From assembly GCF_006345805.1 (NCBI RefSeq), contig NW_021833062.1, positions 1 through 64,000 of the forward strand: a stretch of 64,000 bases of DNA, read 5' to 3'. Positions 27,625 to 56,890 of this stretch are shown piece by piece. The translations under genes and the position numbers were made by a program. Each line of letters opens with the position of its first letter. Position 1 is the stretch's first letter. The notes below the pieces were generated by a model. It had not been told where the DNA came from. It did no database searches and worked only from the letters and a program-made list of their open reading frames with translations. This stretch comes from Octopus sinensis. Taxonomy: Eukaryota.

Positions 27625-27667
27625 ATGAAATATGTTCTACTACTTCTACTTTTAATTCTCCTGCAAG
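27625..27667 (+). CDS. Candidate exon 1 (signal peptide) MKYVLLLLLLILLQ
   Basis: ATG with A at -3, K followed by a Leu-rich hydrophobic core, consensus donor AAG|GTAAGT in phase 1. Confidence 0.6.
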
Positions 27668-28339
27668 GTAAGTAAAATCCATATCATTTCACTTGATCTC
27701 GCAACGAGTGAGGTATCCATTATCTCTTAATACGTATATATGTATACCCGTCTCTCTACATCCCTCCCCACCTCTCTCCCTCTCTCTCTCTCCATATATA
27801 TATATATATGTATCACCGTGATCGTCGTGACTGACCAGGATATCGGATGCTTCTATACATCGCTTATCACCATGTGCTTGGCATTGTTTTGGCTTTCAAT
27901 GACGCTATCCCGCTGGATAAGAGAGCAGGCCAACAGAAAAAAGAGCGAGAGAACGTCGTGGCGAAAGAGTACAGGAGGGATATCCACACCATCCTACCGT
28001 AGCTGTCTCCGCACGCAGAAGCATACACATACAAACGCATACACACACATGCATACAAACACACACACGCACACACACACACACTCACACACACACACAC
28101 ACTTACACACACATATATATAGATAAATTGATTTAACAAATATAAATATATTTGTGTCTATGAATATATATGCATGTATGTATGTATATATATATATATT
28201 TTGGCGGGGGGGGGGGCACACACCACATTCCCCAAAACGGAGGTACCCAGATATAATGCGTGCTACAAAACACCAGCATATTATTGAAAGGTCAGCTGCT
28301 GAACAAGAATCTTTCTTGCGCATGGCATAAAAGATTGAA

Positions 28340-31300
28340 CAGCAGCTAACCTGGCTCAATCAAACTCAAACTCGCAGATGGGACTATCCACAATTCACAA
28401 GACCGCCACAGCAAATAGACCCAAGTTGGACACCACGTGCAAAAGCACATACATCACCTCGATGCTCCTACTGAACATCAGAGGACTGCTAACACACAGT
28501 AACAGGACAAAAATCCCGTTCTTGAGACACCTTGTTGCATTCAATCAAGCCTTATGCATAGTACCTTCGGAAACACACCTGAAACCGGACATAGTAGATG
28601 CAGAAATACACATACCGCAGTATGTTGTACTACGGACATACAGAAAAGAAAGGAGTTATTGAGGAGTAGCCATGTACATCCGCTAGGACCTCACACCTCA
28701 GGTCTTTTGTCATGCTCAAATTCGGTGTAAGACACACTAATTGTACATATAAGGCAAATTGGTGTAGTTATATGTGCTACATATCGCCCTCCAGCTGCCC
28801 CAAGCCATGTGGGCAAGTTTGAAGATTGCCTTATAAACATATAATTTCTAGTCACATTAGAACAACACAAAACTTTACTTCTTATGGGAGACCTCAATCT
28901 GCCAATGTCAAATGGCCCGAGGGCCTTTTTCTCACAGGAATGACACGATGTGAATGAGGACAGGCGAGGTCCCTCCTGAAACTTATCAACACTCCGTACA
29001 TGGAGCAAGTACTACTCCAACCAACCAGGGCAGGTAACATACTGGATCTCTGCTTCACAAATAATATGGATCTCATCCATAATGTGAAAGTGACACAGAC
29101 ACTACTCTCGGAACACAGCATGTTAGAGCTGACCAACTACGGGCCAAAGGAAAGCGTGGACATGCAGCCTACAAGAAAACCACAGAAACTTTCCAGCTTG
29201 AACTTCCATAAGGCAAACTGGAAACAAATTGAGGAAGAGATCCTCAAACAAAACTGGCCTGAATGTCTATCCTTGATGGACATCGACATGAAACTTCAAC
29301 AATTCATGTCTGTAATGCAAGCCATATGCTTCAAATGTGTCCCAGAGAGAAAGGCCACTGTACATAAGAGCAAAATTGCCAGAGAAAGGAAAATTCTAAT
29401 GAGACGGCGTACAAAATTTCAAATCGCCTAAACAAAAAATTGAAAGCAGTGAAAAGTCCCACCTGAATATAAAACTGTTGGAAATTGAACCCATGAAAAA
29501 GAAAGAGCAGACAAAGAAGCCTGGGCTTTAGGCAACATAAAATCTAACCCCAGAGCTTTCTACAGGTATGCCAAAGAAACAGCTACGGTGCACTGTAGGA
29601 TAGGGCCACTCCTTGAAAATGATGGCACGCTCACAGGAAACCCAAAGAGGATAAGTGAAATACTAAATGAGCAATTCACGAGTATTTTCACTCCAGCCCT
29701 AGGGCATATTCATGTCAGCAATCCAACTGACTTCTTTACCACTGCAGATATAAAACCAGGGGCTGCGATGTAATAAAAACGATGTAATAAAGGCTATAGT
29801 TAAATTGAAAACAAACTCAGCTACTGGCCCCGATGGATTCCCAGCAAACCTCTTAAAAGTATGTAAGAGAGTCCTAACAAGACCACTGCAGTTCCTCTTT
29901 CAGAGCTTCCTTGCAACTGGCAAATTTCCAAGAAAACTGAAGGTAAAATATGCCCTATTCAGAAAGGAGGTAGCTGAGCGGAGGCCAATAACTACAGACC
30001 TGTCTCTCTCACCTCACACACCAGCAAGATCATGGAACGAATGGTCAGAAGAAAACTATTTACTTTCCTTAAAGAAAATGACTTGCTTCCTGACACCCAA
30101 CATCGATTCTGACGAGGAAGAAGCTGCCTAACTCAGCTCCAACAACACTATGACTGGGTGCTGAAACGACTGCTCAACCACTCAAATGTGGAAGTGATAT
30201 ATCCCGACTTTGCAAAGGTCTTTTATAAAGTCGATCGTGGAATGATATGTCAGACACTGCGTGATCTTGGCATCGTAGGAAAATTGGGAGAATGCCTTCA
30301 TGACTTTCTGAAGGATAGAATCCAAGATATAATAGCCAATGGGGTCACTTCCATTAACCCGCAAATAGTGGGCGGTGGTCCGCAAGGCACTGTTTTGGGA
30401 CCACTGCTGTTCATAATGGCCCTTTCTGACATGAACTCAGCCACACAGAAGTCCACGATCACACGTTATGCAGATGATACAAACGTTTCACAGGCAATAC
30501 TGAACACTGAAGACACTAAGCACCTACAATGTGACCTGGACAAAATATACAAGTGGGCTGAAACGAATAGCATGCAGTTCAATGCTGAACAGTTTCAAGC
30601 TTAATGCTATCAGCATGCAATACTAAAAGCAATACCCAATAAATTCACTGGGCCTGGTGGAATTGCAATCCCAGAGTCAAAATCAGTGCGAGACCTGGGT
30701 ATTTACGTGAGTGATGATGCAACCTTTCATGTGCATGATGCTAATTTGGCAATGAAATGTAGGCGGCTGACCGGATGGATTCTTAGTTTCTTTAGAAAAA
30801 GAGACCAGGAAACCATGATGGTCAATTGGAGGACACTTGTCCTAAGCCACTTTGACTATTGCTCTCAGCTATGGTCACCAGCCAGTGTCAAGTAATTCAC
30901 AGAACTTGAGGCGATCCAACGAAATTACACGAAGATGATAGCCTCCGTGCAGCATAAGAGCTACTGGGAAAGACTCAAGAGATTAAGACTCTATTCATTA
31001 GAGCGTAGGCGAGAGAGATATGCCATAATATACATCTGGAAGATCCTAGAAGGACTTGTCCCAAACTTTGGCATCGAGAGTTACACAAATGCTACAACTG
31101 GGTGCCACTGCATAGTGCCAAGGACTCCAAATTTGCTATCAAGATGTAGGACAGATGCTGAGATAGCCTGGGCTTCAGCGGCCCACAGCTCTTTAATATC
31201 CTCCCGAAGAACCTGAGAGAACTGCATGTGGTGGATGCAGATGTCTTTAAAATGAAAGTGGATCTCTTCCTGTCAGGTGTCCCAGATGAACCAACTTCAC

Positions 31301-31460
31301 GGCAGGAGGTGCAGATGAGGGCAGCTGCATAGAATGCCCGCATTCACCAAATGGCATTTGATAAAAAGCATTCGTGAAGTAAAATCGTGTAGCATCATCA
31401 AATGGCGGTTCAGCAGCATGGACACAGCTCCTGAGCTGAAACAAGATGAGGTAAAAAAAA
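28340..31460 (+). mobile_element. CR1/L2-type LINE ORF2 (APE+RT), near full length, pseudogenised
   Basis: LLNIRGL, ETHL, GDLNL, PTRAGNILDLCFTN (APE); ATGPDGFP, DFAKVFYKV, PQGTVLGPLLF, YADD, LERRRERY (RT and C-terminus). Confidence 0.9.
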
Positions 31461-32014
31461 AAGTCAATATATATTTATATTTATGTATATATATATATAT
31501 ATATACGCATATATATATATATATAATATATATATATATATATATATATACGTATATATATATATATATGTGTGTGTGTATGTGTATAAGGATATATATA
31601 TATATATATATAAGTGTGTGTTTGTGTGTATGTGTATAAGAATATATATACATTGTAACAAGGAGGATATTGAAACATCATATATATATTAATCCAAGAT
31701 ACAGTGGTTCAATATATCATATATTCTAGAGATATTTCTGCAATGAATATATAACGAAAAATATCGGAAACGGTCAAGCAGTATTATCTACTCAAACAGA
31801 GTATTGTTATGTATAATAATCGATATCTAACTAAGGAACATGCTGATTAATTGATAATGTAATTCCTTACAATTGGATATCTCTGTTTTGTATCTCGATC
31901 ATATTACTGATTATAATAATAATAATAATAATAATATAATAATAATAATAATAATACTAATAATAATAATAATAATAATAATAATAATAATAATAATAAT
32001 AATATTAATAATAA

Positions 32015-54993: not shown

Positions 54994-55132
54994 AGGCCGT
55001 TCCAAAAGACACTATATTATTTCGTAATCTAATGACTTTGCTATTTCTTGTACAATTGACTTCAAATGTTAACAGCATCGATAAAAATAAGTCAAAATAT
55101 TATGGTTAAAGTTTGATATGTTTTTAAGTATA

Positions 55133-55869
55133 GGAATTGCATTCACTATAAATGATAATGATATTTGTGTGTTGGAATATGGTCGACCACAGTCGAACAA
55201 GACTGTGCAGTTTACTTTGATGATGGATTTCACTAAAAGGTCGCCAACGGCAAAGCGGTTTTGGACCTGGCTCAAAAACTTCAAAAGCTAAGATTGTCTG
55301 TGCAGGGGAAGACGATCAGGACGAGCACTAACATTGGACGAGACAGTCGAGGAGGCTAGCCCGAAACTCTTTGAAAGTTCCAAGATCTCCATGAGAAGAA
55401 CAAGTTTGGAAATCCAGATTCCGCCAATGACTGTTTAGCTCGACCTGATGAAACACTACAAGCTGAGGTTCATTCAGGCCATAATGGCAGACGACAAGCG
55501 ACTGCGCAAACAAGGGGCTATGTGAAGGGCTTGGTCTATGCCACCTACACCCTTTCTGAAAACCTAGAGGAACTCGAGCAGAGAATCACTACCGCACTGG
55601 AGACTGTGACACAAGACATGCTGCCGAGTTTTTGGGAGGAGGTACATTAACGCCATGGCGTGTGCCCTTCCTTAGGCGTTGCGAATATCAGACATTTGTG
55701 ATATTCTTCATGGAATCCACGTCCATTTGAATTCCTGATGCAATTTTTGCAGGAATACGTCAATGCTGACCAAATTTAAACCTGTTTAGTTTCAATTTCT
55801 TTTGGCTATGTAATTTCTGTGATGTTTATATCTCAAAAGATATCAAAGATCTTGGAAGTAAAGCACTGT
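55133..55869 (+). mobile_element. Tc1/mariner deletion derivative (duplicate of 9330-10066)
   Basis: Near-identical at +45803. Confidence 0.75.
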
Positions 55870-56846
55870 ATGTATGTATATATATATATATATATATATA
55901 TATATATATATATATATATATATATTATATATATATATATATATATATATATATATATATATATACGTGTGAGTGATCATTCAAAATTCTTTCATTACTC
56001 ACTTCCAATTATTGCAGGAAACGGGAATTGTACAATTATAATCATACATGTCTCTACATGTCACGTTGTAGAGACCTATGAGCAGTTTTCCACAAATCTA
56101 CTTTTGCGGCTGTTGAAGTGACGAAAAGGTTATAATGACGGTAGAACAATCTAGATGATTAACGTTCTTACACCTAAAGAGATATTCACTGAGAAATAGA
56201 AGTTTATGGTGAAAATGCTCTATCGTAAGACGTAGTGAGGCACTGGCATCACCTTTTCCAGTTTGGTGAGAAATCGGTTGAATCTACAGTGATTCCTGGA
56301 CAACCATATACAACCACATGTGACGACACCATTACTAAAATGGAAGATACCATTTCTGAAGTATTGGCGACTTAATTCTCGGCAATTCCCCCAAGAAGTG
56401 TTCATAAATGTAAGAATGTAGGATCCATGGAAAACTGATCACGGCCATTTGCATTTGCGGAAGGCGCCTACATGATGGATTACCCTGATACTGATATGTG
56501 TATATATACATAAAGATATATTTACGTACAAACACGCACACACACACACACACACACACTCAAACACACACACATATATATATATTCGCTCCAACATTCG
56601 AAACTCGATTACTTTGACCATATAATTTTTTTTATTTTCTCAAAATAAAAACATATATATATATATATATATGTATATACGTATACACACACACACACAT
56701 ATATATATATATATATATATATATATATATATATATATATATATATATATATTTGTGTGTCCTGTGACACACAAATATCTAAAGTATATTTCTCTTTTCC
56801 CTTAGTTTTATAATAACTTCATACCATATTATTTCTTTTTCTGCAG

Positions 56847-56890
56847 GACCTCACTGGGATGAAAATAACAATCTTCAGAAATACGACTGA
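56847..56890 (+). CDS. Candidate terminal exon 4 (G)PHWDENNNLQKYD*
   Basis: Strong acceptor, phase 1, AATAAA at 56995-57000. Confidence 0.45.

Follow-up and report, generated by a model that had tools for sequence, protein, structure and literature searches.

We analysed a stretch of 64,000 nucleotides (nt) of the Octopus sinensis genome (NCBI RefSeq assembly GCF_006345805.1, contig NW_021833062.1, positions 1 to 64,000 of the forward strand), which we call the window throughout. The window has a GC content of 34%, and more than half of its sequence occurs in it more than once. On its + strand lie four short exons, separated by long introns, which together specify a small protein with a signal peptide and eight cysteines (Table 1). 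When the exons were spliced by script after direct reading, they yielded a coding sequence (CDS) of 369 nt and a product of 122 amino acids (aa) followed by TGA. We regard exons 1-3 as probably a real, coding, lineage-restricted gene for a secreted protein. The gene had been proposed in an earlier reading made from the letters of the window alone (the sequence-only reading), and its exon coordinates, GT-AG ends, phases (1, 2 and 1), CDS length and product were reproduced exactly by reading and scripted splicing, as were the cysteine spacing and the three CY-x6-C motifs that it had listed. The AATAAA that it placed ~105 nt past the stop codon is present at 56995. The tandem duplication that it reported corresponds to a second copy of exons 3 and 4, 45.8 kb upstream, and its description of the gene as buried among retrotransposons was apt, since decayed pieces of non-long-terminal-repeat (non-LTR) retrotransposons fill the introns. 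Its central claim, a spliced gene for a small secreted eight-cysteine protein, is supported for exons 1-3 on intrinsic evidence.

Table 1. Features of the four-exon gene (copy B), its partial upstream paralogue (copy A) and the surrounding repeats, in window positions. Slashes mark splice junctions or, in the exon 2 peptide, the end of the signal peptide; residues in parentheses are encoded by codons split between exons.
Feature	Position	Length	Strand	Remarks
TATA-like A/T box TTTAAAATTAAAAT	27573-27586		+	~40-50 nt before ATG; direct reading
Exon 1, coding part	27625-27667	43 nt	+	ATG, MKYVLLLLLLILLQ, first base of Gly15 codon; phase-1 donor CAAG/GTAAGT
Intron 1	27668-39347	11,680 nt	+	GT-AG, phase 1
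Exon 2	39348-39447	100 nt	+	(G)YVAA/HFCYVTAITTCRDSMIKYPLRNPDLHYC(D); signal-peptide end, Cys1-3, first CY-x6-C
Intron 2	39448-52789	13,342 nt	+	GT-AG, phase 2; retrotransposon-derived repeats; near-identical tandem tract begins inside, at 45804
Exon 3	52790-52971	182 nt	+	(D)RLKGFKGCYMKRVSSCASKNEISQNKFWNLLRVKDPLACYQGEDSQCVSVIRKIAYKGFC(G); Cys4-8, two CY-x4-S-x-C-x-S motifs
Intron 3 (model of the sequence-only reading)	52972-56846	3,875 nt	+	GT-AG, phase 1; inverted retrotransposon fragment at 53157-53895
Exon 4, coding part	56847-56890	44 nt	+	(G)PHWDENNNLQKYD, then TGA; least certain exon
Candidate polyadenylation signal AATAAA	56995-57000		+	105 nt past stop; weak evidence
Exon 3 of upstream paralogue (copy A)	6987-7168		+	One codon differs from copy B
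Exon 4 of upstream paralogue (copy A)	11044-11087		+	Identical to copy B
Non-LTR retrotransposon, sense strand	28378-31216		+	In intron 1, ~700 nt past exon 1; broken frames; RVT_1 at 30158-30604
Reverse-transcriptase fragments in intron 1	31873-32907, 34704-35228			RVT_1 matches
Inverted piece of the 3′ part of the intron 1 retrotransposon	53157-53895			185 nt past exon 3; 86% identical to 30747-31482
Second inverted copy of the retrotransposon 3′ part	7354-8092
Repeat of ~1.45 kb, five copies	627-2123, 15443-16874, 35119-36621, 46430-47926, 58791-60238	~1.45 kb		85-90% identical
Open reading frame of 405 aa	60309-61526	405 aa	+	No Pfam match; related copies near 45102-45689 and 33836-34160

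The splice donors read CAAG/gtaagt, GCGA/gtaact and TGTG/gtatga for exons 1, 2 and 3, and the acceptors read tttcaag/, tttcttttag/ and tttttctgcag/ for exons 2, 3 and 4. If exon 2 used an alternative in-frame acceptor, at 39360, the only change would be that the signal peptide loses GYVA at its end. Exon 1 could also join exon 3 in frame at a weak AG inside the latter (52801, + strand), so that exon 2 would be skipped. Such skipping is unlikely because a strong acceptor sits 11 nt upstream of this AG, and its product would carry an odd number of cysteines (five). Upstream of the ATG, the A/T box may represent a core promoter; A/T-rich motifs are frequent at the GC content of this window.

The predicted signal peptide consists of an n-region (MK), an h-region of 11 residues (YVLLLLLLILL) and a c-region (QGYVAA). 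Applied by hand, the −3/−1 rule points to cleavage between Ala19 and His20 (A19/H20), with valine at −3 and alanine at −1. The mature chain would comprise 103 aa, with a mass of 12.07 kDa, a pI of 8.9, a net charge of ~+6 and no N-glycosylation sequon. Its eight cysteines are separated by 7, 16, 8, 7, 22, 7 and 12 residues. Of its three CY-x6-C motifs, exon 2 encodes one and exon 3 two, all in the frames set by the splice phases. An AlphaFold2 single-sequence model of the 61-aa exon 3 peptide alone contained four helices (mean pLDDT 68.5, pTM 0.44). Foldseek comparison of this model with the PDB returned no significant neighbour and nothing below E=8, the entry 3s0g_A appearing at E=9. The model weakly supports a mostly α-helical fold.

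We scored all GT and AG sites on both strands of the window (128 kb) with simple consensus matrices, whose frequencies were taken from general knowledge. The exon 1 donor, AAG/GTAAGT, scored 11.8 bits, a value reached at only 2 of the 6638 GT sites. It is the sole AGGTAAGT in the 128 kb, ranks as the best donor of the window, and is placed exactly at the end of the ATG-initiated, leucine-rich frame of 14 codons, MKYVLLLLLLILLQ. When both strands were scanned for ATG-started hydrophobic frames with a donor directly downstream, 33 candidates passed lenient criteria, and the frame at 27625 was the only clean one; nearly all of the others were translations of TG or TA microsatellites with weak donors. 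Exon 1 lies outside tandem repeats, has no repeat match within 150 nt, uses five different leucine codons and has an A at −3 before its ATG. Considering how often AG and GT sites of compatible phase occur, and the background of the motif described below, we roughly estimate that a signal-peptide exon of this quality would occur in the right phase with a probability of at most ~0.1.

Two other frames lie close to exon 1. On the minus strand, the ATG-started frame MSVVQHTAVCVFLHLLCPVS (28639-28579), located within the intron 1 retrotransposon, ends at a strong donor (10.6 bits) and is probably a chance occurrence. On the + strand, an open frame of 133 codons with at least eight cysteines (27051-27452) lies 170 nt upstream of exon 1. 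We rejected this frame as part of the gene; Pfam and homologue searches with it were empty, and it too probably arose by chance.

Further evidence for the gene comes from exons 2 and 3. Exon 3 is flanked by an acceptor of 3.9 bits (top 3%) and a donor of 5.3 bits (top 5%). In the six-frame translation of the window, CY-x6-C occurs eight times: three times in the gene, twice in the duplicated exon 3 and three times on the minus strand. The occurrence in exon 2 is the sole one on the + strand besides those in exon 3 and its copy. Within exon 3 the two motifs are 31 codons apart, against a background of ~3 per 128,000 codon positions, and by our rough estimate the chance of finding two in one well-flanked exon is negligible. 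Exon 2 is supported because its phase fits both exon 1 and exon 3, because it carries this motif, and because it consists of unique DNA of higher GC content (0.39, compared to 0.26-0.29 in its flanks). GC content exceeds that of the flanks in exons 2-4 but not in exon 1. All four exons fall in non-repeat DNA, and their matches within the window are limited to the partner in the tandem array. The exon frames open shortly before the acceptor and close 4-14 nt past the donor.

The points that weigh against this gene model come from its 3′ end, from the statistics of its exons, from homology searches and from the comparison of its two copies. At the 3′ end, exon 4 was named the least certain exon by the sequence-only reading. 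Its sequence, acceptor and phase stood, but a statistical preference for it did not: exon 4 is no better than four rival strong acceptors. Although its own acceptor scores 7.3 bits, within the top 0.35% of all AG sites, the 5 kb past exon 3 contain five strong acceptors including this one, and two of the five at least match many real sites. The rivals, at 53419, 54200, 55676 and 57435, score 6.3-9.5 bits. Both a tail of 14 codons and an AATAAA within 105 nt are often expected by chance (AATAAA has a frequency of 2.1 per kb on the + strand). If the exon 3 donor were read through, the protein would end in ...KGFCGMTF, and a further AATAAA, at 53097, lies past this read-through stop. Moreover, all eight cysteines are encoded by exons 2 and 3, and the cysteine framework is complete without exon 4. 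It is thus possible, though we hold it to be the less likely case, that exons 1-3 are real and that the transcript ends otherwise than modelled, by read-through or at a terminal exon that begins at 53419, 54200, 55676 or 57435, perhaps with extra small exons. Besides the strength of its acceptor, exon 4 has in its favour that its DNA is unique and has a GC content of 0.39, compared to 0.23 upstream, and the acceptor at 53419 falls within the inverted retrotransposon fragment. A different 3′ end or extra exons would be compatible with the core gene model.

Within the core of the model, the splice sites of exon 2 scored moderately (acceptor −1.5 bits, top 21%; donor 3.4 bits, top 14%), in line with the remark in the sequence-only reading that its AAG acceptor is weak. 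By our rough estimate, an exon 2 that bears the motif and has a compatible phase would occur by chance with a probability of ~0.1. The CY-x6-C motif was itself chosen after the fact. Cysteine density is at background: of the 321 open stretches that reach 61 aa or more, 56 have at least five cysteines in a 61-aa segment, owing to TG/CA microsatellites. Amino-acid composition, expressed as log-odds against the window's own open frames, ranked exon 2 in the 59th percentile and exon 3 in the 43rd. Downstream (3′) of exon 1 there are 97 other combinations of a phase-1 acceptor and an open frame, mostly in sense-strand open reading frames (ORFs) of retrotransposons. The gene structure rests on sequence evidence and is known here from genomic sequence alone.

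Searches for homologues were uniformly empty. A Pfam-A hmmscan of the 122-aa product returned 0 families even at E<=10, in agreement with the sequence-only reading, which could assign no named family, and the exon 2 open frame alone likewise matched none. In a word-indexed search of the full product against 5.8 billion clustered proteins, no protein shared three common 5-residue words with it. An exhaustive phmmer search of 1.84 billion representatives with the 61-aa exon 3 peptide gave no match at E<=0.001; a sequence search of the PDB gave only noise; and a degenerate-pattern DNA scan of JGI metagenomes found none. In the literature we found nothing specific on a matching cephalopod cysteine-rich family. 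In a control search, the reverse-transcriptase ORF of intron 1 recovered 1459 relatives, of which the best were 63-76% identical and came from ENA or Logan contigs, without a match to itself. Since the best retrotransposon match was 76% and no self-match appeared, the source genome seems to be absent from the protein collection. The negative results cover only annotated or ORF-called close relatives in the collection that was searched.

These empty searches, the background-level composition and cysteine density, the many phase-compatible alternatives and the selection of the pieces after the fact are all consistent with an explanation in which there is no gene, only four chance open frames with chance GT-AG ends drawn from 64 kb of AT-rich, microsatellite-rich DNA. 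We consider this explanation distinctly unlikely. It would require that the sole perfect AG/GTAAGT donor in 128 kb fell by chance precisely where a textbook signal-peptide frame ends, and that exon 3 carried two closely spaced CY-x6-C motifs with a third on the same strand, in an exon of compatible phase. The exons also avoid all repeats.

The copies in the tandem array provided a further view of the gene. Positions 1-12288 of the window correspond to 45804-58113 at 99.4% identity, with a tandem period of ~45.8 kb, and the gene copy at the left end of the window is a 3′ partial one, consisting of exons 3 and 4. Along 45804-58113 there are no differences up to 52850 (7 kb), then 9 substitutions up to 57572 (4.7 kb), then ~7% divergence up to 58113. 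Beyond this, 58114-63891 is collinear with 13989-18683 at 87-96% identity, with indels. An additional 1.7 kb is present in unit 2 (12289-13988). Because a tract of 11.8 kb that spans exons 3 and 4 is near-identical between the units, while the adjoining parts differ by 4-13%, the pattern suggests an old tandem array with a recent tract of gene conversion or unequal crossing-over. The array is more than a simple duplication made by the assembly.

Of the differences between the copies, the first two affect a single codon of exon 3, which is GAA (Glu69) at 52851-52853 and AAC (Asn69) at 7048-7050, a non-synonymous double change. With 9 substitutions in 11.8 kb, corresponding to ~6 mutational events, the copies are too alike for a selection test between them to reveal constraint. 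This lack of measurable constraint, like the orphan status of the product, would be expected if the locus were decaying or had never functioned, being recently born or dead, with exons that are intact and maybe transcribed but that make no protein that matters. The huge, retrotransposon-loaded introns fit such a locus as well, as the sense-strand element 700 nt past exon 1 could end transcripts early. Nevertheless, every frame and splice site is intact in both visible copies, amplification and homogenisation in a tandem array are more typical of genes in use, and the three-fold internal module and even number of cysteines suggest a folded domain under selection. We therefore judge a decaying or functionless locus to be improbable.

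Retrotransposon debris is abundant around the gene (Table 1). The ~1.45-kb repeat probably represents the 3′ end of a single retrotransposon family. Weak zf-RVT matches occur in ORFs at the margin of one copy (2117-2590) and within another (15877-16575). By its sequence, the 405-aa ORF near the right end of the window resembles the C-terminal portion of a retrotransposon ORF2. Scans of the window for Rfam families and tRNAs found nothing. Although same-strand non-LTR debris dominates the surroundings and the unit is repeated, it is very improbable that the eight-cysteine exons belong to a mobile element or to a larger multi-exon gene, or were captured by either, as within the window exons 1-4 match only their array partner 45.8 kb away, show no Pfam or retroelement similarity, and are bracketed by an ATG with a signal peptide and a stop codon of their own.

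We compared the predicted protein of the favoured gene model with known families. The coral SCRiPs are a taxon-restricted family of small secreted cysteine-rich proteins that were found as transcripts (PMC2652719). Like them, the octopus product has a signal peptide, a small mature chain, an even set of cysteines and a lineage-specific expansion of its gene; the SCRiPs have no detectable homologues outside a narrow lineage, and for the octopus product none appeared in the collections that were searched. It differs in having no sequence relationship to the SCRiPs, in its three Cx7C modules, in its spacing of 7-16-8-7-22-7-12 over ~103 aa and in being known from genomic DNA only. The kind of gene that the locus most resembles is nonetheless the taxon-restricted, small, secreted, cysteine-rich kind of which the SCRiPs are an example. 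Of the features that define this kind, a plausible signal peptide (A19/H20) and an even cysteine count (8 in 103 aa) are found here.

Resemblance to other families was more limited. Insect odorant-binding proteins (OBPs; PBP_GOBP, PF01395) have a six-cysteine signature that includes C2-x3-C3 and C5-x8-C6. The octopus product would share with them secretion, a size of ~12-14 kDa, disulfide bonding and frequent tandem arrangement of the genes, and its exon 3 fragment is predicted to be helical. However, no hidden Markov model (HMM) match to this family was found, the C2-x3-C3 and C5-x8-C6 elements are absent, and the sole structural echo is the non-significant Foldseek hit to 3s0g_A (E=9). The sequence-only reading had seen a loose likeness to DUF19-type domains. 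Pfam DUF19 (PF01579), the nematode T20D4.11-like domain, has ~130 aa and 12 conserved cysteines. It is likewise extracellular (a predicted property here), cysteine-rich and without known function, but the likeness was not supported: there was no HMM match at E<=10, and the octopus product has 8 cysteines in 103 aa.

Attractin of Aplysia, a water-borne helical peptide pheromone of molluscs, contains six cysteines. The octopus product is predicted to be of the same general type, namely small, secreted, helical, disulfide-stapled, fast-evolving and extracellular, in a molluscan context. Unlike it, attractin is approximately half the size and has six cysteines in another spacing, and the likeness claims no sequence similarity. 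Twin Cx9C (CHCH) proteins form helical hairpins with paired Cx9C motifs and lack a cleavable signal peptide, whereas the octopus product has Cx7C three times and an N-terminal signal peptide. The eight-cysteine motif of the plant nsLTP type runs C...C...CC...CXC...C...C (see PMC3908880); the octopus product has neither CC nor CXC. The product shows the defining features of none of these groups, whether SCRiPs, OBPs, attractin, nsLTPs or CHCH proteins. The most fitting description is a new cysteine framework within a known kind of protein, the taxon-restricted, small, secreted, cysteine-rich proteins.

If exons 1-3 and a suitable 3′ end are expressed as modelled, a primary transcript of ~29 kb would be processed to an mRNA of ~0.5 kb. 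The pre-protein would enter the endoplasmic reticulum, where its signal peptide would be cleaved after Ala19 and four disulfides would staple a mostly α-helical bundle, each Cx7C pair lying on one helix face. An unglycosylated mature protein of ~103 aa would then be secreted and would serve as a soluble extracellular factor that binds or signals without being an enzyme, for instance in a pheromone-like or carrier-like role or as a host-defence effector. Folding and secretion are inferred, and so, even more, is the extracellular role. Secretion would follow from established knowledge of signal peptides, and the extracellular role is suggested by the size, charge, cysteine content, orphan status and tandem amplification of the protein.

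The gene is much more likely to be real than any one functional class is to be correct, and the venom, pheromone, immune and carrier functions put forward in the sequence-only reading are guesses. In its most specific form, the favoured reading would make this gene the founding member of an undescribed, lineage-restricted family of secreted helical proteins. Such a family would be built on three Cx7C "staple" modules and encoded in an array of 46-kb units homogenised by gene conversion. Its copies would diverge at surface residues (Glu69/Asn69), and it would serve an external chemical function as a pheromone, chemosensory carrier, host-defence factor or secretion component. We regard this combination as rather unlikely.

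Small secreted cysteine-rich orphans are common in animal genomes, and the locus opens no long-standing question; establishing the function of such proteins usually requires expression and biochemical work. The locus shows that a perfect signal-peptide exon can be detected by sequence alone, 11.7 kb from the next exon. If confirmed, the gene would add one unannotated secreted protein family to this genome, in whose annotation short genes with very long introns full of transposons are evidently overlooked. It would also be a clear case of an orphan gene maintained in a tandem array of large units that has recently undergone gene conversion.

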